Below are positions 3,171 to 63,800 of a DNA stretch of 64,000 bases, in pieces; position 1 is the first letter of the stretch; each line of letters opens with the position of its first letter. A program made the position numbers and the translations under genes. Source of the stretch: Takakia lepidozioides (taxonomy: Eukaryota; Plantae; Bryophyta); NCBI GenBank assembly GCA_030704615.1, contig CM060734.1, forward strand, positions 35,650,001 through 35,714,000, written 5' to 3'. The notes beneath the pieces were generated by a model. That model searched no databases. It was not told the origin of the DNA and was given only the letters and a program-made list of their open reading frames with translations.

Positions 3171-3649
3171 TGCAACCTATCAATGCAAATTAAACCTCAA
3201 TCCTCGTTATTGCAAGACACATCACCTAGTACCCATCCGCTTCAAGCACTACACCTGATTTCCTAATGCTTTAATCTACAAATACAGGCTCACAAGTGAG
3301 AGGGGAGCAAGGGGGGTGGGGATTTGACAATGTGCAGGTACGGCCATCCCTGGTGACCGTACCGGCAAGGCTCCCACTCTAGCATTCAACTCGTCGGTTA
3401 AGCGTAGTATGCTCCAATAATAATAATACCCAATTCAGAATAAATAAAATGTAAAGCCGTGTCCACTGTCTATGTCACCACGGATTCCAGAATGACGCTA
3501 CGCAATGGAATAGTGCCAAGTGTCGGAATGCAGGGCCGAGCAGCCCTATCCTGTTTGGAAGCAGGGTGGGAGCGCTCTCGCTGCCTCGCTCTCGCTAGTG
3601 CCGACTGTGGACCACGATTCACACCCACTCGGGCCCAACACATCCCGCT

Positions 3650-4385
3650 ATGGCGTCCGTCGCTGGGCAGCATTTCACTATGTCGTGCAAGACAAATGCT
3701 GCGGTGTCCAGCCTGCAGAGGCCGCACCAACGGCAACAACAATGTAGAGCGATGGCCGCTGCCTGCCCTGGAGGTCAGTTGCTACTGCACATTGAGGTTT
3801 CCCTTTGTGGCTGAAATATGTGTGATAGTAATTCTGCCAATTTGAGAGGAGAGGGAGAGAGAGAGAGAGAGAGAGAGAGTACTCAATAAACCTTGCGATT
3901 CATTTGCAGGGCGGGCATCGTTGTGCGGCAGTGGAATTACTAACAGTGCACAATCATGGTTTGCTGGGGATGTAAGGGAGCTAACAGCAGCGGTCCAGTT
4001 CACTGCCCCAGCAGTGGGCAACCGCAGGCCAACAGTGGTGATGGCAAAGCCCACCATTCAGTTCATAAGAGGGATCGATGAACAGACTGTTCCTGATGTA
4101 AAGCTTACGCGGTCCAGGGATGGGACCAATGGTGTAGCGACGTTCGTGTTTGACCAACCGTCAGTGTTTGATTCCTCGAGGGAGCTAGGAGATATCACCG
4201 GCCTCTACATGCTTGATGAGGAGGGTGTATTGTCATCTGTTGACGTAAGCGCCAAATTCCTTAATGGGAAACCGGCAAAGATTGAGGCCCGCTATGTGAT
4301 GCGGAGTGGGAGGGATTGGGATCGGTTTATGCGGTTCATGGAGCGGTACGCTAATGAGAATGACCTTGGTTTCGTCAAGAAATGA
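3650..4385 (+). CDS. PSB28: Photosystem II assembly factor Psb28, chloroplast precursor; join(3650..3773,3910..4385)
   Basis: Mature domain [32 protein letters not shown]...[12 protein letters not shown]. Phase-1 GT-AG intron 3774-3909 restores an in-frame Ser/Ala-rich transit peptide ([10 protein letters not shown]...). Confidence 0.95.
3844..3879. repeat. (GA)n microsatellite in the psb28 intron
   Basis: Direct read. Confidence 0.9.
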
Positions 4386-15273: not shown

Positions 15274-18200
15274 CTAGAAGTGAATCACATCTGGAAGAAT
15301 AATTGGTCTGCCAGTGAGCTTTGTTTTGCATATGGGACACAGTCTGGTCCTCCTCCACTCCTTTTGAGCACATTCATAGCACACACTTGCATGGTTGCAA
15401 GGAATGAAACAAGCCCTTTTTCAGTTATGGAAGTGAAGGAGGAGCCTTCTTTTAGGAGGACAACCTCCAATTTCCTCAAAACAGACGACACACTCTGATC
15501 GGTGTGGCTTGGTCTCTCGCGATACGTGTATGTGTTCTTTGTGTATTCCCTCTCGCATCAGTTCCTTCTCTCTTCTGTGGTGTTTGTCCACCTGTTGTGG
15601 AGCATAGGGACGCTTATTGAGCTTAAAGATAGTGGTTTAAAGGAGGAAGAGAAGGAGGCAGGCCTGAAATGCTTTTGAAACATACTCTATGAACAAGTGT
15701 GATGACGAATACAAGGCTGTATAGTAATGCTCCCTAAGCTTACTTTGAGAACCGCACTTGCACCTACTGCAATAAAGTGGTGGAGAGATGATTATACTAA
15801 TTTTGGTTTTGTGATGTTGATTCCAGACAGTCTGCTGTGCAACCCTCTTCATAACTTGCTCTTTCTACAGGCAATTCCTGCTTGTTCTGCCAAACTGGGT
15901 GCAGGATCTATGGCCACAAGGTTACAGCAAACATCTTATGAGTACATTCTTTCTATAGGAAAACATAAACTTACTCTATGGATGTTGTGCAACATTGGAA
16001 AACAGCTTGACCAAGGGAATGAATCTTACCTCTGTTGACAGCTTTGACCTCAGTCCTTCCAATTCTACAAAGTGCTCATTCTGGAGTTGTTCTCTCATCA
16101 ACTCCTTTTCTCTTTGTTCCTTCTGTAGTTGTTCCAGCATTATCTTCTTCTCTCTTTTGTGATGTTCCTCAACCTGCCAGAAACAAATGAAGGTTGTGAG
16201 TACTGCAGATTCTCTAGCATGGGAGGAAAGGAAGGTGGTATGGTGGCAAGTTGTATCTGGAGGCAGGTAATGCAAATGCTGCTACTTCGGCTCAGCTCTT
16301 CTTGTGGAGACTCTCAAGCCCCAAGTACCAACTTTGGGGCCCTGCCCATGAGGTGTGGTCCAAGAGCTTACATTCTTCCCTCTCGCCAGACTGACAAATG
16401 CATTACATGAGAAACGATGAAGAGAATAGCACGCACTTCTAATTCAACCAAGTGTTCCTTGTGAAGTTGTTCTTGCATATGCTCTTTCTCTCTTTGTTCT
16501 TGCTGTAGTTGTTCTCGAATCAACTCCTTTTCTCTTTCATGGTGCTCCTCAACCTACCAAAGGACCACCACAACCTTCAGCACTAATGATTGTCAAATCA
16601 AGGAAGAAAAATGAAGAAGATTAACTTACAGAGATTCGTTCACCTTGTAAAGCTAACACCACCTACAACATAGGCTCTCTTTCTCACCTTTAGTGCAAAC
16701 ACTTGGGTACTGAGTTTGACAAGGTAATGCCCCTGTCCTTAACCATGTGCACCACACAGTGTGACCTCCAACATATGTGCGAGTGGAATCCAATCAAGAG
16801 CTTCCATGTGGTGGCCACAATGTCTAGGCCCTTAGCAACCAGGAGGAAGTTCATTGAAGGAGAAAAGGAAGGTAGCAAGGAGGGGTGTGTAAGAGGGAAA
16901 ACAAATCTTTTTCTAACCTCAAAATGTGGATAGAACCAAGTAAAGCTTGTGTGCTTGACTCCGAAACCCTGGACTCTGTTAAAGACTTGCCATCGTTATC
17001 GTGCCACACACTGGTCAGTGATATACACAGCTTGAACGGAAAAATGGTACTCTTTCATGATTTTTCTGAAATATGAAACTTTGTTGCAAAGGTAGACCCC
17101 ACAACACATTCATTCCTGGAGCCATAACGGGGTACCACTCACTAGAGTAAGAAACTTAGCCCAATTGGGTAATAGAGATATGAAGTGGTTTTGGTTGCAC
17201 TTGTATTAATAAAAAAGGCTGGTCCTTCTAAGAACATGAATGTACTCGCAAGACCTTTGCCATAGCCTTGTGGCCATACCACACCCAGTTTGGGCGGAAC
17301 AAGAACAAGAAAGAAACAGAGGGATTTGTAACAAACAGAGAGGGCTGTCCTCAGTTGCATGCCATTGCTTTCATAGATCCTGCGGCAAGTTTGGCCAGAG
17401 CAGAATCACCAGCACATGCAGGGACTTCGCAAGAATTGAACTTGCAACCTTGCACCATGAGCAAGAATCATCCCCATAGATCCAATGACCACATCTATAG
17501 AGAGGAGAGGGGGAGCAATTTGTGCATGCAAGATGACATTCCTTCTTGAGGGAGGAAAGGCAAGTCAATTCACTTTAGGTGTGGATGAAAATACGAAGGA
17601 AATGGGGGACCACGCAACCTCCAGCAGATCTGTGTTGTTTCAATTTCATTTGATTATGTGACCTGCGCAAGCTGAACTCAAGCTCAGTCATATGATTTTG
17701 CAACTCCAAAGCACGTAAGCTCTCGCGCTTCATGCTTGCCATAAGTTTTCGCTCCATCACTTCAGCAACTTTAAACCTGTGGCAAGCAAATAGGAAAGTT
17801 TTAGGAGAAATTAATAATGCAACAACCCATCCCTGAAAATTTCTCCAACTCTCTCCACACAAAACATATGTCAAAATGCTTTATGACAACCACAACTTGA
17901 GGATCCCTTCTACTGCTCCAAACTAACTGTGAAACTCAACAGACAAAAGCACGCCAAAAGAATGTAATCATGCAGTTCCCTGAGAACGTTGGCTTGCCAT
18001 AGCCTTACAGCCATTGACCCCGCGGGAAACTAACTCTCCTGGAGTCTTTTGTGGAGTTCGCACCCACCAGGGTTTAGCTTATCCCCTCAGCTCAGCTGCA
18101 GGTATAAACTCGTCTTCCTGCAACTGTCATTAAGGTGCTCGTGGAGGCACTTGTCCACATGCAAACACGACAGCCCGGTTGCAGGATTCTGATTTTAGTT

Positions 18201-28954: not shown

Positions 28955-30085
28955 CACCTCTTGGCCCTTTTCCAGGGCTGCCAGGTTTGGACACGCACTG
29001 CAAACGCACACAAACGTGATGTCGTTGGGCTTCACTCCTTCCCCTATCATTTGCTCATAGGTCTCCAAAGCCTCCATCCCACGCCCCTGTTGTGCATACC
29101 CCTGCAAGCATCGTGTATTACAACACCACATCTTGTTCAGCCATAGTGTTGACATACATGTCCACCAGGGCAATGTTTAGGATGACATCTGGTACAATTC
29201 CAGCTTTGACGATGTCACCATGGACCTCTTTCCCCTTTTCCAGAGCTCCCAGGCTTGCACACACATTGCAAACACAAACAAATGTGATGTGGTTGGTTTT
29301 CACCCCTTCGCACACGTTTGTTCATAGGTCTCCAAAGCCTCCATCCCGCACCCTTGCTGTGCATATCTAGCAATCATCACACTCCACGACACCACATCAC
29401 GTTCAGCCATACTGTCAAACACTCCATTTGCATCCTCGATGCACCCACATTTGACATACATGTCCACCAGGGTAGTGTTCAAAATGACATCGGGTACAAT
29501 TCCAGATTTGATAATGTCACCATGGACCTCTTTGCACTTTTCCAGGGCTGCCAGGCTTGCACACGCATTGCAAATGCAAACAAACGTCATGTGGTTGGGC
29601 TTCACCCCTTTCGCACATCATTTGCTCATAGGTCTCTAAAGCCTCCATCCCGCGCGCTTGCTGTGCATATCCTACAATCATCGCAGTCCACGACACCACA
29701 TCTCGTTCAGCCATACTGTCAAACACTCCATACATGTCCACGAGGGTATTGTTCAGAATGACATTTGGTACAACTGCAGCTCTGACCATGTCGCCATGGA
29801 CTCTTTGCCCTTTTCCAGAGCTGCCAGGCTTGCACACGCATTGCAAATGCACAAAAACGTGATGTGGTCGGGCTTCACCCCTTCCCCCATCATTTGATGA
29901 TATGTCTCCAAGGCCTCCTTACCACGTCCCTGCTGTGGATACCCTGCAAGTATCGTGTTCCATGACACCACATCTCGTTCAGCCATAGTGTTGAAAACTC
30001 CCTTCTCATCCTTAATGCACCCACATTTGGCATTCATGTCCACCGGGGTAGTGTTCACAATGACATCTGCAACCACTTTAAGCCT
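28955..30085 (-). pseudogene. PLS-class PPR repeat array, degenerate
   Basis: About four ~300-bp triplets: LVDMYxKCG..VFDSMAERDVVSW..GYAQQG..EALETYEQM..GVKPNHITFVCVCNACASLAALEKG, with frameshifts. Confidence 0.9.
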
Positions 30086-37139: not shown

Positions 37140-37960
37140 TGACATGTATGCCCTGGTGGACATGTATGCCCAATGTGGGTGCATTGAGGATGCAAAGCAA
37201 GGAACTTATGTGTACTCTGTTTATATACTGGGTTGGCAGGGAGGCTTTGGAGATTGTGAATGGGTGATGCTTGCAGGGTATGCTTGCAGGGACTTGGTAT
37301 GGAGGCTTTGGAGACCTATGATCAAATATTGATGGGGGAAGGGGTGAAGCCCAACCACATCACGTTGCAGCATACTGGTACTTCACAGCCATGGCGGCTC
37401 TCTCAGCCCCTCCATTTTTTTTTCTTTTGGTTTTTTTGGCGCTGGGAGAGAGCAGCAGCTCTGCTGTCTCCTCCCCCTTGCTTATGCCGATCGTTAAAGG
37501 GGAAATTGTCATTCTGAACTCTGCCTTGGTGGACATGTATGCCAAATGTGGGTGCAGCAAGCCTGATGTGAAGGGAAAGTTTGACAATATGGCTGAACGA
37601 GTTGTGGTATTTTGGAGTGCCATGATTGCAAGGTATGTGCAGCATGGGTATTAAGGCTTTGGAAACATAAGAGCAAATGATGTAGGAAGGGATGAAGCCA
37701 GACCAGGCCGTCATGTTCATTTGTTTTTGTAATATGCATATGCGAGCCTAGCAGCCCTGGGAAGGGGCAAAGAGGTTTATGGTGACATTATCCAAGCTGG
37801 AATTGTACCAGATGTCATTCTGAACATTCCCATGGTGTATATCTACGTCAAATGTGAGCCTGGCAGCCATTAAAAGGGCACAAAGGTCCATGATGACATC
37901 GTCAAAGCTGGAGTTGTCACTCTAAACACTGCCTTGGTGGATATGTATTTCAAGGCAGCC
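37140..37960 (+). pseudogene. PLS-class PPR remnant
   Basis: ALVDMYAQCGCIEDA, GVKPNHIT, LVDMYAKCG, with stops and frameshifts. Confidence 0.85.
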
Positions 37961-40340: not shown

Positions 40341-43010
40341 AGTAACTAAGACATTTTGGATATTTATATTTGTATTTTGTGTGTTGGGACTTCATTTGGT
40401 CTCACATGCCAAGTGAGGTATCAAACCTCACTTGGGACATGGGGATGGGTTTTCCCCTTGTGAGTGTTGAGGAGGGCTCATCTTCTTGTAGTTGAGCCTC
40501 CATGAGCCTCTCCCACCTCCATAGCTCTAGGTATTGAGAGGGAGTGTGGTGAAGGCTTTGTAGGGTGGATTCCTTTAGCAAATGTGCCCTTGGCTTGACT
40601 TAGTTTATGTGATTGAGTGGATTCATGAGTGGAGTGTTTCCCTTGTGTTCACTTTCATTATCACTACAAGAAGATCACCTTATGCTTGTGAGTGCGGAGT
40701 GTAAGGATTACTTTAGCACTTGTGTCGGTGTACACCAAGGAGCGAGAGAGCTAGGAAAAGCTCAAGTATTTCACAAGGCTTGCAAGGAAAGGTACTTGTG
40801 GTGTTACACCAAGGTGTTGGAGAGCTCAAGAAGGAGCTTGTTTGCCACAAGATTTGCAAGGATTACAAGAGGGAAGTCTTGTATGTGTGGAAGCATGGAT
40901 TCTAGGGATTGAGAATCATTTCTATGCATTATGGAATCAATGATGTGTGCCATGGCTTGTGGAGAGCAACTAAATGATTGTTAGTACTCATTTCACTATC
41001 AATCTAGGGTTAAGCAAGCTCAAGTGTGGATGCTGTGGAAGAGAAGCCAAGGAGCTACATAGGCTTGGGCTCGAAGACAACAATGGCAAGCACTTGGAGA
41101 GCATTAGGAAGCTCAAGAGGTTTGAAGGGGAGCATGTGAAGAAGTCTTCCAATCATGGTTGGAGAACAACTTGTGGAAAGTCCTAGAAGAAAAGAGATTG
41201 TGGCTCAAGGCATGCATAACAACTTCAACCATGTGACAAGACAAGGAAGGGGAAGGTGCTCATGTACTCATTCCCTTTTGGCTTAAGTTTTGTGGTGGAT
41301 GGTTGATCAAGCAAATGATGCTTATGTGGAGCATGCTTCCCAAGTGTGGCTTCCAATTTCAAACTTGAGAAGAGCTAGAAAATAAAAGGAGCAAGTTGAT
41401 TCCCTTGTGTATGAGGTGATGCATATGTGAAGCATGCTTTTGGCTTGAGCTTTGCAATTTCAAGCTTGAGAGGAGTGGCTCTTGAGCTAGCAAGTGAAGG
41501 GAGCTTGAATGACCAAGGCTTGAGAGGAGACAAGGCTTGTTGGTTGCCAAAGGAGGTACAAGCTTCATTTTGACTTCCAATGAGAAATTGAGCTTGTTGT
41601 GTGGCCAATGCATTGCTAGTTGAGTTGGAGACAAACTTGAATAGCTTAAGGTGAAGAAGATCAAGGAAATTTGCCTTGGTTAGAGGCGAGTGGACACATG
41701 CAATGGGATTGATTGCAAGTAAATGAGTTAGGCCTCCAAGTTAACATAGAATTCATGGATGCTTGAGGGGATTAAGCATAGAGCCCCAAGGAGCACAAAC
41801 CCTAGCTTGGTAAGGCTAAACCTCAAGGACATAGAGAGGGAAGTGGGTAAAGCCTAGGGGGAAATGAACTACTCTATGAGGGGGAAATGGCTATTCGGAG
41901 GGGGAAATGGCTATTCGAAGGGGGAAATGGCTATCCTAAGGAGAATACAAGGGGAATACAAGGGAAATATGTATAGGCCCAGGGGAATACTGGGAAAATA
42001 CTATGGCATATTCTTAGGAATATTCTTTGGGAACTTTGGGAACTTATTGGGAACTTGAAAACACATTGGGAACGCATTGGGAACATGGTGACATAGGAAG
42101 AGTCCTTGGAGGACCATTGGGAGTCCTTGGAGGACTGTTTGGAGGACCATTGGGAATCCTTGGAGGACTGTTTGGAAGACCATTGGGAGTCCTTGGAGGA
42201 CTATTTGGGGTCCTTGGAGGACCATTTGGAGGACCATTTTGGAGTTCTTTGGAAGACTATTTGGGGTCCTTGGAGGCCAATGTTTGGCGAGCTTGAGGAG
42301 TTTTTGACGACTTGTGTGAGGGACTATTTGGGGTCCTCGAGGGCTAAGTTTTGGAAGGCTCTTGGGACTTGGTGTACTGTTTTGGAGTCCCATTGTGCAA
42401 GGATTGGGAGCCTTAGTGAGATTATTTGAGAGACATATTCTTGATGGCTCCTTGAGAGTTATTTGAGAGACCCTTGAAAAGTAGTCTTGTCTATTGTTCA
42501 AGCAAGAGAGTGTGGAGATAAGGTAGTGGGATGAGGGCATGCTGGGATTAGGAATTGCTTTAGTCTCTCTTCCTTGTAGTCTTTCACCCTCTCTGTAGGC
42601 CAAAACCTTTCCGTAGGTGGAGGCAAGAGTCAGTCCTGGTTTGGGCTGGGGTGTCATTGCAGGAGCGACACTGTGGAGTGTTTTTGGTGTGAGGGAGTTG
42701 TTGTCTTGATTTTCTTGTGTTTGGATCCCCTCCACACCTACATGCTTGACTATGCGCCATGTTAGCTTTGTGTGGGCACTTGTTTTCATAGGAGGCTGGT
42801 CCGGATTTGATCACCAGTCAATCCTAGAGCGTGCCGTCGGTGGTGAGGCTGGGGTGATGACCAAACAGACCATCATTGTTTCTATTATGGTGAGGCTGGG
42901 TTGATGACCAGCAGACCATATGAGTGTTTGCGGTGGATGCAGGTGCAGGTTTATGTTACGAACCTAGTAGTCTAAGCCATAAGCCGCAACAGGTTCTCTA
43001 CCCGGTTACT
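40341..43010 (+). repeat. Putative 5' LTR (~2.67 kb) with internal minisatellites
   Basis: Begins AGTAAC (as does the 3' copy at 50355) and ends GTTACT. GGGGAAATGGCTAT 21-mers at 41870-41940 and ~33-bp GAGTCCTTGGAGGAC..TTTGGAGGACCATTGG repeats at 42100-42280. Confidence 0.65.
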
Positions 43011-50238: not shown

Positions 50239-50759
50239 CTTGGATAGAGGTAGTGGGGCATGACAGTGGTGAGGTTGACAAGTGATCCAAGGTCTAGCTA
50301 ACGGGAGTTCAATGCCATGGACACCCAATTGAAGCCATGGATTGCAGGAAGGCGAGTAACGATGGGGCTATATTTATATTTTGTGTGTTGGGACTTCATT
50401 TGGTCTCACATGCCAAGTGAGGTGTCGAGCCTCACTTGGGATATGGGGATAGGTTTTTCCCTTGTGAGGATGGAGGAGGCTCATCTTCTTGTAGTTGAGC
50501 CTCCATGAGCCTCTCTCACCTCCATAGCTCTAGGTATTGAGAGGGGGTGTGGTGAGGGCTTTGTAGGGTGGATTCCCTTAGCAAGGGTGCCCTTGGCTTG
50601 ACTTAGTTTATGTGATTGAGTGGATTCATGAGTGGAGGGTTTCCATTATGTTCACTTTCATTATCATTGTGGTATAGCTTTCGAGGACAGTGTGCTTAGA
50701 TTGTGTGGTGGACAGCGATATATGTTATGGCACGATGCTTAGGTGCACAACAGCCATTA

Positions 50760-50943
50760 TGGTCGTTGGCGCATTTTGAAGTGTTTGAATTCTAGGGTGG
50801 ATAGGGCAAGTGCAGTGCCAATTGCATGCTGTGTGTTGCACAATTATTGTCAGATGTGGGGCATGCCTAAGCCAAGGAATGGTGGAATTAGAGACAATTT
50901 GGCAGATTTTCGTGGACAGATTGCCCATCCTAAGAAAAGGTGA
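50760..50943 (+). mobile_element. PIF/Harbinger transposase C-terminal fragment
   Basis: GRWRIL...IACCVLHNYC motif. Confidence 0.75.
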
Positions 50944-52084
50944 AGCGGCAAAAGTAGGAGGCGAGATAATGAGAGAGAAACTGCACACACAATGGTTTAT
51001 TGACAACCCATGCGAATAAAATTGTTTGAATAGCAACCATGAATCCATACTTCATAAATTCTCGACATTCTACAACCCCAAATGTTAATGCAGGTCACAG
51101 TATGAAGAAAAACAAAGTACTTCAAGCTCCACCTCGGTTTTCTAGGAATAACTTCTTGTGTTCTTATTCAATTGATGTGAAACAACATCCCAGAGCTAGG
51201 GCATCAACCTAGCTTTCCAACAAGCCATCACACGCCCATACTGCAAAACTTTTCAATATTCTACAACCCCAAATGTTAATGCAGGTCACAGTATGGAGAA
51301 ATACAAAGTACTTCAAGTTCAAGCTACTTTTTTCTTGGCATAACTTCATGTCTGTGCTCATTGTTACTAAACACACTCATAAACCACAACGAATTAAGCA
51401 CATCAAGTGCTACCACCCACGGAGGATCCGCCTGAACCATCGTTTGGCTTTAACACATCTGCAAACAAAGCGGCCATGTGAAGGTGGGTTGGCCAACTCC
51501 CGACATGTTTGTTCGCTTTGAAGAATCTGCGAGGTGACTCTCTCGGTCATGGCCATCTTAAGCGTCTCCATCTCTTTGATCAATCCCCTCCCCAAACTCT
51601 TTTATGGCACTTGCAATGGTAGTTGAACCTCCAGACAAACGTCGTTTATTTGAATTTGGACGACCTTGCACATCTGGCAACTTCAAAAACAAAATCTGCC
51701 TGTCAAAAGAAAGGCAATGAGAAAAAAATGCCTGTCACCGTGAAAGTTTAAAAAAAAAAAAAATCCTGTCAAAAGAAAGGCAAAAATTTCTGATAATTAG
51801 GGGTAATTTTATTACTAAGTCCACCTAGGAGAGGCTCACAAAGCCTGAAAGGTACAAATTATGAATAGAGAATCTGCCAGAGATTACTGATAGGTATTAG
51901 CAATTTTATTAGGAAGTCCACCTAGGAGAGGCTAAAAAAGGTACAAATTGTTAGTAGTTATTGTTCATCTTACTAGTAAGTCCACCTAGGGAGGCACTGC
52001 GGGCTGCCCTTCTTTGTGTTTCAAAGCCTTAAATCTCTAGGCTCTCCCTTTTTGTAACGTGTGCGTGCTCCAGCCTCCATTCTT

Positions 52085-52300
52085 AGTGTTTTTTTTTTTC
52101 TTACAAAGGTGTTGAGTAGACGGATATTTGGCTCGAATCCATTTTGGTTAATGTGGGCATGCACTTGCTTTCCCGTTTCTAGGTCTTTACTCTTGATACA
52201 CCCTTGTAAAATGCACAATTAAGTACTGGAGTCTGGCGGCCAAAATGAATTGCTGGTTCAAAACGTGTAGTGCTTATTTTACTTGTTCTCCCTTACACGG
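52085..52300 (-). pseudogene. N-terminal PLS PPR fragment
   Basis: CILQGCIKSKDLETGKQVHAHI..GFEPNIRLLNT. Confidence 0.7.
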
Positions 52301-53441: not shown

Positions 53442-55196
53442 ATGGGACGCACCACTCAAATTGCTCGCATGTCGACTGGGGGCCCAGTGGGGCGCAAGGA
53501 GATTACTTCCCGTCCCGTGACAGTAAGTAGGATATACCTCTCTCCTGATATGCCAGAGCTTTGGATTGTCTGAACAGGAACTTTTGTTCCATTCATTTAG
53601 ACATTTCAGAGAAGAGGAGACCAGTTTGTGGTTGAATGCAAATGTGGCACTCCCTAACAACTGTCGCAGGTAAACGCATTCTACCTGTATCTAGGATGTT
53701 GAGGATGACTCTTTTGCTTCCTCCCTGCGTCTAAATTTTTTCGTCTTTCATGTACATGGCCCACCCGTTGATTATTTGCTTAACTTTTCAATGCTTATGT
53801 GGGAGTCAGAATTCACCGTGGAAGTCAGATTGCAGACGTTTGACAGCAGTCCTGGAAAAAGCAAATAAGGTACACTCCTTCCTGACTCTTTCGTTCTCCA
53901 TCAGCCCTATTCCTGCCCTCTTCACCGAGGTAACAGATTCAAGCTTGTTTTAATGTGGTTTGCGTACTGTGAATAATGATAGGAGGTGGACAATCTCAGA
54001 AAAACTAACAAGAAACTGCGAACCCACGTTAGGGGATTGTGGAGGATTCATAAGTCTCGGAGGGCCACTTGGATGAGGCTGCTCCGACAAGCCTCAAAAG
54101 TATGTTGCGCGCTCTCACTCTTCTTTTCCCTTGCAACAGTATGAGAACGGCTAGAATTATCTAGAACTAAGCGGAATCTCGTTATGCGTTGTGGGACTTC
54201 GTCAGCCGTGTAAAGCTACAATTGCACTGGAATTTTGATCCGATGGCTCATATATCGTGTTGGGCCATATGCCCACAAGGCTAGCTCAAGCACAACTCAA
54301 AAAATTCAATAATGGGACCCAGCGTTTGAGCTCAGCCTCAGACTCCAGTCTTACAGGACAACTTCATCGACAACGCAGTGATTTGCACAATGTAGTGTGT
54401 CCACCCTGTTCACATTTTCCTCTTTACTCACCAAACATTATTCTCTGCATGACTTATCAGGGTTTGGTGGGTTTGACAGTCGGGTCGCTCAATCTTGGGG
54501 TTGAGAGGCAGATGGTGGGAGCATAGGTTTCTCAGGTTGCGCCATGCAAGCAGTGGATATGGAACTTCCTTTCTTTACCTCCTGCCCCTGCAGATAAGGG
54601 GGATACCACTCTAATACCCTGGCAGCATTTTCATCCGAAGACCAAAAATGCTTGACCTTCACAAAGGGCTCAGCTTCGTGCAAGGATTTAGGCCCTGGTT
54701 TCGTTCATTTATCTGTTTTTGATATGGACTTTCCGCAGATGTTTTTGGGTATCTTTTTCTCCCCATTTTGTCTTTCCCTTCCTTGTATGTTACTCTAGCT
54801 TGAAGTTGGTATTTTGAAGGATTCTGTCCAACATTGTATCAATATTCGCAGGTGCATGATCATCTTTTAAGACAGAATGTGAAGGTTGTGGCTGAACATG
54901 TAGAGGAGAAGGCGACGTGGGTGGAAGCATTGCAGGAGGCAACAAAAGTGGCACAGGAATCAGGCTGTGTAGTGTGTTTCCAAGAGATTGGTGGGATAAA
55001 ACCAAAGAAGGGATCCGTGACAAGGCAGGTTAAAAAACCCGACATACGGAAAAGAGCATGTCTCATCCCATGCAATCATGCGAGTTTCTGTACTGACTGT
55101 GCTTCCAGGGAGTGGAAGACAAGTGGCAAGTGTCCCCTGTGCAACATTAAATTGACTAAAAAGCCCTTAACACTTCCGACTATGATCCATTTTTAA
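53442..55196 (+). CDS. Histone-H3-tail-like / coiled-coil / RING-HC protein; model join(53442..53522,53578..53669,53836..53869,53983..54099,54852..55196), ~222 aa
   Basis: ACAATGG start and in-frame GT-AG splices (first intron only 55 nt; extra exons in 54100-54851 possible). Intact RING CVVC..PCNH..CTDC..CPLC in the last exon. Confidence 0.6.
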
Positions 55197-55741: not shown

Positions 55742-58491
55742 TCACCTAGCCAACATAAACTTGCCATCTTGCTCTATCTTGGACTCTAGTTCCGAGGGCT
55801 TGGCAACGCATTTGACAGGCAGAGTAGCGTTAGGGCTGGTGATGACAGCCGACACATCGGAATGACGAAGTTGGCTCGTGTTGCTTGCGTTGCCCGCAGG
55901 GCACCGTTTGTTAAGCCATTGGATAATGTCCCTGAACACGAGGTCTATATTCTCGTCCGGCTCTCCGGAGGTCAAGCCGTGCCACATGCCTGGATAGAGT
56001 ATTAGTTCCTTGTCAAAGCTGTTGGCTTTCTCATATAGCTCTTTACTACATTGTGGATCATTAACTTGGTCATCTTCTCCATGCACCACAAGAAATGGCA
56101 AGGTCACCTGTCAGATTCATATCCAATATGCAGTTAAAACACGCTCTGCCTCACTCACTGGCGCAATCTTAAAATGATATTTCTCTCCTTATGTGAGGAA
56201 GTGTATCGCAAATAAGGATTGTGGACGCCAACAAGTCCGCGAGCAGATGCAAAAATGTTTCCATCGTCAACCAACAAGCTGGCTCATTGCTCATACCTCG
56301 TCAAGCCGTTTTTCGAGGTCCGAACTGACATCCAACAGCTCCGCTGCAGTCTTCAATCGTGGTCTGTCTTGGTAAATATAAGGATTTGCTCGAATCTGCC
56401 AGACACCCATTTCTCATTAGTTCTGATACACATGAGAGTAATCCTCCAGATTTATCAATTGTACATCTTCGTAAGTCCAGATGCAAGCAGTCCCGTATTA
56501 TCAACAAGGTTTCTGTTAGTAAGCACTAAAATTTGTCATTTCTTTGCAACCAACAGTGAAATTTGTACCTCTTCTCTTTTCAGAAGATCTTTGAACGCGC
56601 TATCGATCACGTTTTTGGTTGGAACTATTTTCCAGGTCGGAATATAGTTCGCCAACTTCTTCAAAATGTTTACCACTATTGCAGGTGGCTTCAGCTTCTC
56701 AGATATCTGCAACACATGTGAAGATCAATCTTCCGTCCTTCGGCACCATCGGCTCCATATCTCAAATACTGACGCGTACGTAGACTCCAAGTATAACAGA
56801 TCAGTACATAACCGTACCTTACACATGGGGGCAACCAGCACTGCACCATTCCACTCATGTGGTTCTTTTCTATGGATACGGAGTGCCACTGCCCCGCCCA
56901 TGGACTCTCCATACAGAAACCTGGCCTTGTTTTTGTACTCCTCTCTCTCTGCACAACATACATACACATGGACTTTACACATGAACGAGCTTCTTCAAGA
57001 GTGCACGTCTCCTTATCAACTTCGCTCAAGTGACAATATCCATATGTTAGAACAACCGAAACTTGCAGCCGCATTAAATCCACTCCACGCAATTTAAATG
57101 ACTCCACTGAAACTTTGTGAGAGGATCAAGGATTATGAGCCAGAGGAAAGTGGTTACCTCTCACATCTCTGAAAAAGCTTTGACAATCATCCACCAGGTT
57201 TTGAAAGTTTTCAATGTAACTCCATAGTCCCTCCGACTTCCCATGCCCCTCGTAGTCAATGCCAAACACTGCATAGCCTGCTTGCGCAAGCCGCACGCCC
57301 GTATCTGTGGCACAGTGCACGTATGTACATAAGTTACGAGGAATGGATACACATTTACTCAACCTAGTGCAGATTTGCAGGGTTTCATTGTAAAAAACTT
57401 GAAATCAAGGTCAATGTTAGAAGCTGTTTTCTGAACAAATTGTCGTTCACTCGCATAAGAACCTATACATGTCACCTTGATTTCGACGACCATCACCAAT
57501 TTGTGAGGTTTTTCTCGATATCCGGGAACGAAAGTTCGTACAACTATTCCACTTATGAATGTCGATAGGAAGCAAACGATCCTGCAGCAGCTTCTGAAAT
57601 AGTCTAATGTACCTACGGGATGTTGGATTTCGTGGAAATTTTAGTTACCTTTCATGAATACACTCGTCTCCATGGAATATCCTGAATCCACAGACACAAA
57701 CACATTATGTAAAAGACCAGTTGACATATATATACACACTCAACTCCATGATGATTTGTAGACTCTGAAGCTGGTAATTTAAAATCAGCTGACAGTCTAC
57801 GTTTATGAATGTGGATTAATCACCACAAGCCTAACTGGTCATCCCCCAGGGTCATCAAAACCCAAGAAAATACCGTGGCACAGGAACACGAGCGCCTTCA
57901 GTTCCTGACAAGCAGGAAGCCATCGACAGGTAAACAGCTTCACGCCCCTTGAGTTCCGTATGAATTCCTGCAAAGTAAACTGTAATCTTAGTCCCATGAT
58001 ATCAGATCCATCTTACATGTACTAACTATCCATCACGAGTAAGATCTGTAATTCGAGTTCGTAGCCTGTATAATTCTAGTACGAAATTCTCAACATAGCA
58101 TGAACATGTGTAAGCAGCACCCTCGGCTCGAAACTATGCAAACATCCCTTTGTTCAAGTGCTGCTGTACAGCTGCAGATCGACACTGTGTAATGAGGTAA
58201 CTTGGAATGTGATGGCTCGGCTCCATGACGCAGCATTATAATGTCACGTAAGTGGTCTTACAACAATACGCTTCTGAGTGTGCCTGCTTTTGTCTCGAGA
58301 AGCTGTCACACTAGCCTAAGCACTAACTACTTGAGGCAGTTATGCAAAGCCAGTTTCAATTTGCGCCGGGGACCATCCATAAAAGGTGGACCTAAAAGTT
58401 AAAAGTGGAACGCTCAAGATTGAGTAGGACTGAAACGTAAGGAAAATGCACATACCTCTCCATACTTGATTCCAGCAAAACTGTCTACCAT
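55742..58491 (-). CDS. Monoacylglycerol lipase / caffeoyl shikimate esterase-like alpha/beta-hydrolase (8 exons)
   Basis: MVDSFAGIKYGE, NSRGVKLFTCRWLP, LCHGY, DYEGHGKSEG, GESMGG nucleophile elbow, LVVHGEDD, YPGMWHGL; canonical splice sites. Confidence 0.93.
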
Positions 58492-60005
58492 TTCTTCATA
58501 TTTCTGCACAAAACAAGTTCAAGGAACTCAGATCACTGGACGTGTAGCTGAAGAGCTCGCTTTCGGATGCAGCGACAATTGTCAATGTCATCCACTGGAC
58601 AGTGTCGACTCAACTTTACGATCTCTGCACACCAGATCTCATTGCGGACCGCTGTGCCTCTCTCCTACACGCTCTTTACTCTTCTGTCAGCGCTGTAAGG
58701 TTCATTGTTTCATTCCTCTTCGTATTACAGCAGAACACAGGCCTCTGGGAAACAAGTAGGAAAACTCCCAGGGAAAGGGAGCTGCAACCATCTACTTACC
58801 GTCATATCTCCGGCAACCGGAATCGGCTTCTCTGTCTGTGCAACTGTCCCACGCCAATCTGTAGATCAGGATACGAAGAGAGATAATCGAGCAAAGAAGG
58901 CCTCGGCGAACTGCTAGAAACAGAATTCTACTAATATTGGTTTTCGACGTGAACACGCTAACTTATGTAGAACTCCTGGGCAGCACAACAAAGCAGCAAG
59001 CCATTGCAAGTCAACGGCTGAGGGGTGATGCGACTTTGCGGTGGCTGTGACACGGATACGAGTTATCTTGTTTGTGTTGTGCATGAACGCGAATAATTAG
59101 CACGAACCTCCAATCCTGGTCCGCAAAGCGAAGAAGACCGACTTTTGAGTGACTTCCATGACTGCATCACCCCTGATATATATACTCTACTCTTTCGGGA
59201 AAGACCGCGCGGCGGCACTTGTCACATCACGCCGACGTCTGCTGCGAGGCCTTGGGCCGCAGACCTAGATGTTCCTACACACACTCTTCTCGACCTTCCA
59301 GAGCCGCCACCAGCACGACCATCCGTCCCTATCTTCTTCTCATTGCTTTTTACTTTCTAATGTGGGGCAGCCACAAAGCTATTATTAACCCCTCAATCAT
59401 CCGGGTTTGAATAAAGTAATTCAACCCTTGTACCTTTTTCTTTTTTTTCCTTTTTTTGTGACTTTGCTGGATGTTAAAATTCTAACTTGGTTCCTTATGC
59501 AATTTGGTTCCGACCTGTTCCAACTGGAAGCATGTCATTTGGATGATTCTTGCCACGTTTAGAGATTGAACAGGTCAGAGGCCACGTGGTGGGTGAGGAA
59601 ACAGTTCATGTCACTTGGGGGTTATGCCAGATTTGGAGGCAGTCTATTTTTTGAGATGCCATATTATGGGAGGCACCTAAAAACACCTACCGTACAAAGC
59701 AGTAGGCTACTGGCATTTCCATCATTTGATAAAAAAACAATGAGAGGGGAATACCCGCCTGCGCGACCGATCATCACTGATCAGGCCTCTTTATTATAGC
59801 GAGAGGAGACATAACCTGTGTCGTTAAGAACCGGGGCTGATTTCTCTTCCTTAATATCATTTCATTGTACAGCGTAATAACCAGCCATCAGTACAAGGGC
59901 AATACCAAAAAGTATAATGCACGTGTCGATTATACTCTGTGGAACGCACACTTCCGACATTTCTGACGATGAAAGGAAAAAGAAATCATTCCATTTTTTT
60001 CATGC

Positions 60006-60850
60006 AGAGGAAGGCCCCTGTGTCGGACCCCCCTTGAATTTTATGCCCCTTGGATTTTACCGCCTTTGGGCCGGGGCGTAAAATTCAAGGAGCGCCCTCC
60101 ACTCCGGGCGCCCTAGACTGAGGGCCTTCCTCTATACGTAAGGTAATAAGAGGAAGACCCCTTGTTCAGGCGCCCCTTGAATTTTATGCTCCTTGGATTT
60201 TACCGGGCCCTTGGCCCCGGGCAGAAAATTCAAGGAGCGCCCTCCACTCCGGGCGCCCTAGACTGAGGGCCTTCCTCTATACGTAAGGTAATAAGAGGAA
60301 GACCCCTTGTTCGGGCACCCCTTGAATTTTATGCTCCTTGGATTTTACCGGGCCCTTGGCCCCGGGCAGAAAATTCAAGGAGCGCCCTCCACTCCGGGCG
60401 CCCTAGACTGAGGGCCTTCCTCTATACGTAAGGTAATAAGAGGAAGACCCCTTGTTCGGGCGCCCCTTGAATTTTATGCTCCTTGGATTCTACCGGGCCC
60501 TTGGCCCCGGGCAGAAAATTCAAGGAGCGCCCTCCACTCCGGGCGCCCTAGACTGAGGGCCTTCCTCTATACGTAAGGTAATAAGAGGAAGACCCCTTGT
60601 TCGGGCACCCCTTGAATTTTATGCTCCTTGGATTTTACCGGGCCCTTGGCCCCGGGCAGAAAATTCAAGGAGCGCCCTCCACTCCGGGCGCCCTAGACTG
60701 AGGGCCTTCCTCTATACGTAAGGTAATAAGAGGAAGACCCCTTGTTCGGGCGCCCCTTGAATTTTATGCTCCTTGGATTCTACCGGGCCCTTGGCCCCGG
60801 GCAGAAAATTCAAGGAGCGCCCTACACTCAGGGCCTTCCACTACACGTAA
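60006..60850. repeat. Tandem array of ~6 x 145-bp fold-back units
   Basis: AGGAAG anchor at 60008, 60151, 60296, 60441, 60586 and 60731; near-identical units. Confidence 0.97.
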
Positions 60851-63800
60851 GAGAGTAACCTTGCCATAAGTCGCAGAGCACAAGGCTCGGGGAAACCGCC
60901 CAATGACTGGAAACAACGATTTTAGGAAGTTGGGGGAGAAACACGCAGCGAAAATCAAACAGGCCGTCAATTGGTACAGCTGGCCAATGTAAGAAATCCA
61001 TGTTCTCAAAAACCAAAAATGAAAAATATCCCAATTAAAATAACATAATCTACCAAATTTCACGGTGAAATGGGCTCACTTTTGGTGAGGGGATGGAGGT
61101 GCCACACAGGCAGTAATGTCTACCTTCAGTTTTCTGGATGATTTATGGTACGTGGAGTTTGCTTGGCGGACTCAACAAGTAACAATCTCGGCCAGTTTTA
61201 TTTTATATTTTATATTTAAAAAAATAAATGAACAGGGGGATAGCTAGCTTCTGTTTCACACGAGGAAAAACATTAGGAACGAAACTATGAAAATAACCCG
61301 ACAACAGAGGCCGCCTGCGCTCTAGAATCAGAATTTAAAAAACAAATGAAGCTGGGCATGTAACGTATTTAGGTAAAGGCAATGCAGCGAGAGCCGCCGT
61401 GACGAGTGGCAAGTTGTATTATTTTTGGGAATTCCACAACAAATGGCCGGCATTACCCAACGGAATTAACACATGTCAACACCATAAAAATAGCCAAGTA
61501 GTGGACCAATAGCGAAGTCAGACATGAAGCAATAGTCAGCCAAAGATTCCACAAGATGATCCAATGGTCCAGATCAGACGATCCAGTGAATGTTGAGCAC
61601 CATCCAATTACGATATCTTCAAATCAGATGTGGAGTGTCGTGTGTGCAAAATGATTCGATGATGAATGGTAAGCGGTTATGTATTAGGGAATAGGCATTG
61701 GCTGGCGATTCCCCTAAAATAACACCACTCGCGACGAAAGTGGAATTAGAAGCTATGCATGTATCTTTTCATTTTTATTATTATTAATTATGCCGATTGG
61801 TTGGTGAATTCTCTAAAATAATCCCACTCGCCACGGAAGATTCGTCGATGGCCATTGGGAGGCTATAATTCTCTGAAATACTGTGTAGGATTACTTTAGG
61901 GATTTGCCACCAACGGTTATTATCCAACGTAATTGGCTAGTGCGAGACTTATGATATCAACACCAGAGAAATAGCCAATAGACGAATCAAAAAAATTGAG
62001 CAATAATCAGGCCCCAAGACGTCCAAATCGTAGGAGTCACGGAATGTTGAGTAGGTACTAGCCAAATACGAAAAAGACAATGGACCGATAGACAATGTTA
62101 GCTTAGCTAATTAAGGGCTTAATTCCCAAAAAAGATTGCTGGGGAAGGACCCACTGTTTTCAATACAAACCCTTGCCACCCCAACTCTACGGCAACCAAC
62201 GGAAGGTAAACACCTTCATTTATGAAACTTATGAAGTTTTGAGCCCACAACCAAGCGGTTTCTTTTTGGAAATTTGGAAAACAGCACGAGTGGCTATTGA
62301 GTTTTGCAGGAAATAGCAATATATTCTGTTCATCCACTGAAATTTGGATAGAATCATCTTCCTTTATACTTTCATCCATTTCTATCATCTATATTTGGCA
62401 AATTCATCCATAATTTATTTTTTATTTGGAGAAGTTTGGCGATTTCATCCATTTTAAAACAGAGAATTTTGACAGAATACTCCATTTTATTTTTTGTGGT
62501 CGAAATTTGGTGATTATTCGCCACTAAAAGAATGGCTGCCACAAGCACTGACTAGTGAAATGATCAAGTTATGCCCTAACCATTCGGTTATCTATTCGAT
62601 GTCACCCACTTATAAATACTAGGGTTGCTCGTGGCTGCGCACACAATGTTCAAGTTTTTTTTTTTAAAAACTTTTATAAGTTAACTAATTAATTTTGGTG
62701 AAAGTAAAGTTCTACAGCCACGGGAATCAAAAACTACTATCATCTATAGACTTACTCCTTCACTATGGTTCAGTCACCAAGCAAAGATCTCTCAACTGTC
62801 CAGTTTTCGAAACCCTCCGAGGCTCAACTCTGTGGCACTTATGGAAGGCAAGCTGCAAAAAACGTTCTCTGGGGAATTACCTCCACCATCTCTGTCCTCC
62901 TCTCTAATGTTTTTTATGATGTGGGTGTTAAGTCGCGTAAAGCGCAGTCTAACACGTGTGCAGACATCAAGCGGAATTTGAGGAATGCTTCAGCCATCCA
63001 TGCAACCTTCCAAAACACCTTGGGCATCCAGGGTCTTAGGTATCTGCAATAGCGGGCCGAGCTCCCTCCCCTATGCTGGCGTTATCACCGAGCGACCCTC
63101 CACAGTTGAATTGAGCGCGAAGTTAATTGGAAGCACTTGAAACCTTCCACTAAAGCCGTGGCTTCATTACATATAGAGTAGCTCTGCTGTTAGAAAGGTC
63201 AATGTCAAATCTCTTGCCATGACTCTTCCACATTCCATTTCGAAAACAAAACCTTATAATGATAAGTTCCTCTAGGTCACCCCATCGGGAGTTAATCCCA
63301 TATGTTATTTTTTTGGGATGCCATTTCCAGACAGTGTGGCCAAAGTCTTTAGTTCTTTCTCAGGCTCTCGGAGGTCCTGTTCACGACTTCACTGATTACG
63401 GCGTGTGTGCCTCATGGTGTAACAAGGGTTTTAATTTTTTTTCCCCAAAATGATTTCACATAGAGATTTCATCAGGGCCACTGTCCCCTGTTCCTAAAAA
63501 TAAATAAATAAATAAATAAGTTTCAAAGGGCTGCCTCCCCTTTCTCAAAAAAAGAAAAAAAAAGAAAAAAAGGAAAAACATTCAATCAACTAAGTGTATT
63601 GTATTTATTATAGAGAAAAACATTTCGGCTAGAGCTGAAGCCACTTCATTTTATGGCTACTCTTCATTTCAAGGGTGGATTCTATAAAGGTTTTATAAAT
63701 CAGAATCTTAACAAGTAAATTTCAAATTCTTAAACATAGAGACTAAATAGATTTACATACATCTAGTATCTATTGTAGAGTTTGTTGAAGTGTATTTATA

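Follow-up and report, generated by a model that had tools for sequence, protein, structure and literature searches.

The reading that we favour, with a probability of about 45%, is that coding exon 1 of a histone H3.3 gene was copied, has since diverged and now heads a live coiled-coil RING gene in the form of a drifting N-terminal peptide. On this reading coding exon 1 of an intron-bearing gene of the H3.3 type, with its start codon, residues 1-23 of the tail and the surroundings of the first coding intron, would have been duplicated without the rest of the histone and would have come to lie about 290 nt ahead of the coding exons of a coiled-coil RING E3 gene that is itself lineage-specific. 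The copied exon would then supply the start codon and first 26 residues of the RING gene, giving by exon shuffling a chimera of ~200 residues. The peptide itself would be a drifting passenger, with Met9 being one of many substitutions and not a tuned trap. Throughout, the window is the whole 64,000-nt stretch of DNA that was analysed, and the features of the proposed gene in it are as follows:

53442-53522 (+): H3-tail-like candidate first coding exon, Met plus 26 residues, with start context ACAATGG.
53523-53528 (+): GTAAGT splice donor, phase 0, three codons past the conserved plant H3.3 intron position (between Lys23 and Ala24).
53578-53669 (+): optional exon of the model in the original prediction (ELLFHSF...NNCR), ending in phase 2, which needs a 55-nt intron and the alternative acceptor 53806.
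53810-53869 (+): exon NSPWKSDCRRLTAVLEKANK, in phase 0, preceded by a pyrimidine-rich tract and AG and followed by GTACAC.
53983-54099 (+): exon encoding 39 basic helix-like residues (EVDNLRK...RQASK) in phase 0, with GTATGT as its donor.
54852-55196 (+): last exon, with a helical stretch, a C3HC4 RING, the KLTKKP...IHF tail and a TAA stop, assigned from Pfam and the family alignment.

The likeness of the exon to H3 is real. The 27-codon frame opening at ATG 53442 (window 53442-53522, +) translates as MGRTTQIARMSTGGPVGRKEITSRPVT, and in agreement with the original prediction 11 of the 18 residues after Met are identical to the H3 tail, ungapped and in register from Met, with Thr4, Met9 and Pro14 standing where H3 has lysines. 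When residues 1-23 are aligned with H3 1-23 the differing residues include Thr4, Ile6, Met9, Pro14, Val15, Gly16 and Arg23, the last replacing Lys23; positions 19-23 read EITSR where H3 has QLATK, the changes being conservative (E/Q, I/L, S/T, R/K), and past residue 23 there is no resemblance to H3. The ATG lies in a strong context (A at -3, G at +4), and the predicted GTAAGT donor is present directly after the exon, at 53523. An exact look-up of the 43-residue exon-1 frame returned no matching record. Transposon capture of the exon was considered and rejected, there being no inverted or direct repeats found to flank it and its DNA being single copy within the 64-kb window.

Searching 177,635 PDB sequences with the 27 residues by phmmer gave E-values that are modest (0.004-0.14), with the best 60 of 126 matches all being histone H3, one of them via a Cse4 chimera that aligns over H3 residues 1-24. 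Under a random model using the six-frame residue frequencies of the window itself, and with the genome size taken as 0.33-0.7 Gb, the expected number of ATG-anchored matches of at least 11/18 is 8.5e-7 per window and 0.004-0.009 per genome; the second-best H3-tail match anywhere in the window reaches 7/18. Judged on match counts alone, chance resemblance thus modelled appears unlikely, though not negligible for a scan of such extent. Taking all the evidence together, we consider it highly unlikely that an unrelated short open frame merely happens to look like an H3 tail, although a scan of 250,000 windows should by chance yield ~0.2 ATG-anchored matches of this quality, the PDB E-values do not go below 0.004, Pfam makes no call on the exon, and other famous motifs may also have been in mind when the prediction was made. 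Set against these points are the per-genome expectation of just 0.004-0.009, the restriction of the best 60 of 126 PDB hits to H3 (or the Cse4 chimera over H3 1-24), and the finding that the likeness stops where exon 1 of H3.3 does, a strong donor in phase 0 following at most three codons on, which is independent of the criteria by which the exon was first picked out.

The boundary in question is well defined in plants. In 10 of 10 H3.3 loci compared (L032-L041; all from seed plants and all encoding the canonical H3.3 protein), coding exon 1 consists of Met and residues 1-23 and ends ...KQLATK before the GT, in phase 0. Seed-plant loci were used because an H3 protein search aimed at bryophyte H3.3 genes returned mostly mis-modelled long H3s. 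The window exon resembles plant H3.3 coding exon 1 in its start at Met, its tail-like residues 1-23 and its phase-0 GT donor, but differs in that 10-11 of the 23 residues are changed (7 of 18 within the first 18) and in that the donor lies 9 nt beyond the Lys23 position; a donor three codons off the H3.3 intron position, rather than at it, may be counted as a point against H3.3 descent. At the nucleotide level the window exon is 51-60% identical to the seed-plant H3.3 first coding exons. One decayed intron-bearing H3.3 copy, in Salix, has a matching acceptor before Ala24; in this Salix dunnii locus (L031, CM027660.1) the decayed copy (3398-3686) lies 1 kb from an intronless H3.3 copy (2001-2408), and the annotated 193-residue protein P0106 is a fusion of both.

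The absence of a histone fold, which the original prediction had asserted, was borne out in two ways. No Pfam match to the fold (alpha1-alpha3, residues ~45-131) was found in ten open pieces downstream of the exon, and when the 64-kb window was searched by tblastn with five full-length H3 proteins, the H3-like exon alone was matched, with E-values of 2e-4 to 2e-3 that reflect slightly high scores, the queries carrying Met9. The H3.3 exons 2-4, which encode the fold, hence have no counterpart in the window. An H3 pseudogene with a decayed fold was rejected, there being no fold remnant by Pfam or tblastn. The likeness to the tail and the phase-0 donor near the H3.3 boundary, together with the lack of a histone fold, imply that the exon is most likely a diverged copy of the H3.3 first coding exon, and since the window contains no other part of H3, exon 1 alone would appear to have been copied or kept.

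Downstream, the last exon encodes a RING-HC (C3HC4) domain as judged by its motif and profile matches, with a putative role in ubiquitin transfer. All eight of eight zinc ligands are present (CVVC ... PCNH-ASF-CTDC ... CPLC), with a Lys-rich insert between ligand pairs, within an open frame of 114 codons, and the exon is matched by the Pfam families zf-C3HC4_3 (34.4 bits against a cut-off of 27, E 1.9e-8) and zf-RING_2 (27.7 against a cut-off of 27.3). None of C74, H76, C80, C83, C94 and C97 varies across a 13-row family alignment, and no row extending over the first Cys pair lacks it. Checking of the frames exon by exon revealed that 53810-53869, 53983-54099 and 54852-55193 are each open and in phase 0, the first two encoding basic helical sequence that fits the coiled coil preceding the RING in relatives. 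Joined to 53442-53522, they give a model of 200 residues with all junctions in phase 0 and with predicted introns of 287, 113 and 752 nt. The claim of an in-frame splicing route from exon 1 to an intact RING-HC is thereby upheld, via open phase-0 exons and a RING above the Pfam cut-off. The particular route first put forward, via 53578-53669, is indeed in frame, but it requires the 55-nt intron, a short one by land-plant standards, so that inclusion of this exon appears less likely than skipping it, which we prefer.

The stretch before 53810 has the look of an intron end, with its pyrimidine-rich tract and AG, and does not look like coding sequence; an upstream start exon is therefore needed. 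Within the 3.1 kb before acceptor 53810, and with donors accepted at 6 or more of 8 consensus positions, three ATG frames end in phase 0 at an acceptable donor, i.e. the 53442 exon, a frame from the internal Met9 of the same exon and a frame of 6 codons whose ATG lies in a poor context. On sequence alone the 53442 exon is the best candidate for the start exon of the RING gene.

These observations bear on a rival and more doubtful account, according to which the H3-like exon is a dead fragment, a relic of partial H3.3 duplication lying outside the RING mRNA whose in-frame fit is luck; as part of the same account, and just as doubtfully, the RING gene would start at another exon or ATG, or would itself be unexpressed. 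A phase match by luck has one chance in three, the exon could owe its start context and donor to the parent H3.3 gene, and an in-frame ATG at 53750 could start a 192-residue product from an unspliced 5' end. Decayed genes and repeats also lie nearby, among them an LTR retroelement whose end is at 50666 and a paralogue of the RING gene that is interrupted by an in-frame stop. The intron-like sequence before 53810 speaks against a start in that stretch, however, as does the lack of any better combination of ATG and donor within 3.1 kb upstream, and the intact RING exon means that a start exon must exist somewhere. In keeping with a live gene headed by the H3.3-derived exon, the RING exon is open, whereas its paralogue carries an in-frame TGA.

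This paralogue, at window 15277-17775 (-) with its RING exon at 15277-15600, is 59% identical to the RING exon over the 49-residue C-terminal half. Its TGA, at 15421-15423, lies inside the RING insert, and from this sequence the paralogue is probably a pseudogene. Its upstream exons contain repeated VEEHH(E/K)REK... units, and its likely first exon, at about 17660-17775 (MERKLMAS...), reads MERKLMASMKRESL...; these upstream exons differ from those of the RING gene, and an H3-like start is absent from the paralogue region (15.3-17.8 kb).

More distant relatives are found among bryophytes. The Sphagnum magellanicum hypothetical proteins KAH9573235.1, KAH9575168.1 and KAH9560828.1 likewise end in a C3HC4 RING that carries a Lys-rich insert and is preceded by a helical stretch, and the bryophyte coiled-coil RING family shares the C-terminal motif RKRAC(F/L)xPCxHAxxCxxC...W...CPxC...KP...(I/L)HF at the very end of the protein. 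Their identity to the window gene is, by contrast, only 29-58% and limited to the last exon, and no H3-like peptide stands at the start of those whose sequence extends to an N-terminus. A HMMER search with the RING exon against 1.84 billion representatives found distant relatives only, at no more than 58% identity and over the RING C-terminal half, and no close orthologue was found by a word-indexed search in 5.8 billion proteins, which covers proteins of 66-208 residues only. In seven homologous loci from peat-bog metagenomes and Logan contigs (L001-L007), tblastn exon by exon found no H3-like exon, the RING exon alone being shared. Since the paralogue and the homologues lack the H3-like exon, it is therefore a late, lineage-specific addition to the gene. 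The expectation that ARMSTGG would be conserved in relatives thus found no backing, both the paralogue and the bryophyte homologues reaching an N-terminus being without the exon and no orthologue having been found.

The question remains as to what, if anything, the peptide does. Its block Ala7-Arg8-Met9-Ser10-Thr11-Gly12-Gly13 equals that of H3 save for position 9 and, at the level of sequence, Met9 lies in the otherwise intact motif Ile6-Ala7-Arg8-Met9-Ser10-Thr11-Gly12, compared with Thr-Ala-Arg-Lys-Ser-Thr-Gly in H3. Intactness of block 7-13 save for position 9 is what might also be expected of a selected mimic, and may as such be held against the passenger reading. The original prediction was of a K9M trap for SUVH-type methyltransferases, i.e. 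that the tail-like N-terminus is a selected H3K9M-type decoy filling the active site of a SUVH-type H3K9 methyltransferase or engaging tail readers, which we consider very improbable. We have as little confidence in its detailed form, in which contact would be made via Ala7-Arg8-Met9-Ser10-Thr11 and the C-terminal RING would ubiquitinate the captured protein. Similarly, it seems to us a very slim prospect that a RING ligase captured H3.3 exon 1 and kept it as a non-modifiable H3 tail (Thr4, Met9, Pro14) that marks methyltransferases or readers for ubiquitination.

Several points speak for such a decoy. In fission yeast H3K9M traps Clr4 (PMC5030085), and the mutant histone (PMC5030085, PMC8167812) has, as does the window exon, Met for Lys9 while its ARxST context is otherwise intact. 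Around position 9 of the window exon, seven residues are unchanged save for the Lys to Met replacement, the RING is intact, Met9 H3-tail-like stretches occur in non-histone proteins of environmental eukaryotes in our metagenome scan, and in one SIMPL-domain family two members sharing 41% identity have both retained an H3-like N-terminus in which position 9 is Met or Gln. EZHIP, a non-histone protein with a K27M-like peptide inhibiting PRC2, is comparable to the predicted protein in that it bears an H3 methylation site with Met in place of Lys, although its motif is short and internal, corresponds to the Lys27 site and is no histone-exon copy, and EZHIP has no RING.

The parallels are nevertheless incomplete. 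The H3K9M mutant is a full nucleosomal histone, whereas the window protein has no fold and would not be expected to be incorporated into chromatin; a free peptide on a soluble ligase is not equivalent to a nucleosomal tail. In fission yeast trapping by K9M is reported to work together with Lys14 ubiquitylation (PMC8167812), whereas the window exon has Pro at position 14. The known N-terminal H3 mimics (H3TMs), which like the window protein are non-histone proteins whose N-termini resemble H3 after Met removal, follow an A-R-T-K rule, with a small residue 1, Arg2 and a methylatable Lys4 (PMC8166343); the window exon begins Gly-Arg-Thr-Thr, and with Gly1 and Thr4, hence no Lys4, it departs from this rule. 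No use of 'K9M-like' or 'H3K9M mimic' as terms was found in the literature searched.

The pattern of change within the exon also argues for drift. The H3 tail peptide is nearly invariant in real H3, and the loss of ~40% of these residues, with Lys4, Lys14 and Lys23 replaced besides Lys9, is as expected of a drifting passenger. The excess of lysine loss over that of other residues is not significant (p ~0.14-0.19, Fisher-type count from the alignment). The trap proposal is accordingly not supported, Met9 being one of seven changes in 18 residues, the other lysines being replaced too and the relatives, in both the paralogue and the distant homologues, being without the exon, with no orthologue found. 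From this divergence (7/18 tail residues changed, no relative with the exon) we infer that a decoy function is probably lacking.

A scan of metagenome contigs for R-T-x-Q-x-A-R-M-S-T-G-G yielded 23 loci (L008-L030); with the same motif no relative of the RING gene was found in metagenome contigs, and nothing was found in viral contigs. Full-length, intact H3 variants with Met9 were seen as one identical open reading frame in four samples (L011, L014, L024, L028), with further intact variants in L013, L022, L025, L027 and L029; some of the Met9 loci may reflect rare variants of, or errors in, ordinary H3 genes. Non-histone reading frames with an H3-tail-like Met9 stretch encode a VWA protein (L012/L026), in which the stretch is internal and matches H3 2-30, a ubiquitin-like-domain protein (L021), a 1721-residue protein (L019, N-terminal) and a SIMPL/DUF541 protein (L030:110-1006), in which the stretch is N-terminal. 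The SIMPL-domain proteins P0176 and P0179 (41% identical) have H3-like tail starts without Lys4 and Lys9, MARTRQTARMSTGG... and MARTRQTARQSAGG..., with Met or Gln at position 9 and Arg at position 4, and two further SIMPL-domain homologues have degenerate N-termini. In this non-histone family, which belongs to unknown protists, the H3-like N-terminus may represent a conserved mimic of the H3 tail that cannot be modified.

If the window exon is transcribed and joined to the RING, it would represent a clean case of a histone first exon shuffled onto an unrelated enzyme, with a 23-residue tail copy as compared with the 4-7-residue convergent motifs of known histone mimics, and would provide a natural, testable case for a Lys9-to-Met tail outside the nucleosome engaging plant H3K9 methyltransferases. 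Were a decoy function to be established, the protein would be a germline-encoded H3K9M-type decoy, i.e. an H3K9 counterpart of EZHIP arisen via exon shuffling. If the exon is a relic or a passenger, it would be an ordinary outcome of partial gene duplication in a repeat-rich region, and H3-tail look-alikes of this genome should then be checked against the H3.3 exon-1 boundary before being called mimics.

With respect to the neighbourhood, a pair of direct repeats at 40365-40663 and 50369-50666 (~300 nt each, 91-95% identical, 10,003 nt apart) constitutes the LTRs of a retroelement that was originally described as carrying a DNA methyltransferase. Its placement near the H3-like exon was correct, the 3' LTR ending 2.8 kb upstream, and, as had been stated, no link between the two was seen. 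Two candidate relics in the intervening sequence, a Harbinger transposase at 50743-50943 and a PPR fragment at 52021-52218 (-), were rejected, neither having Pfam support. On the other side of the RING gene, 55742-56107 (-) is the last exon of a convergent alpha/beta hydrolase gene of the Hydrolase_4/monoacylglycerol-lipase type (Pfam E 2.7e-12), the stop codon of which lies ~550 nt beyond that of the RING gene. A tandem array at 59917-60941 comprises about seven copies of a 145-nt unit, the inner copies being 97-98% identical. Arrays of ~270-300-nt repeats are also present at 28958-30067 and 37507-37856, with inverted partners 7.4-8.5 kb away, and one arm of these encodes ...VDMYAKCG..., which we take, by eye, to be typical of PPR proteins.
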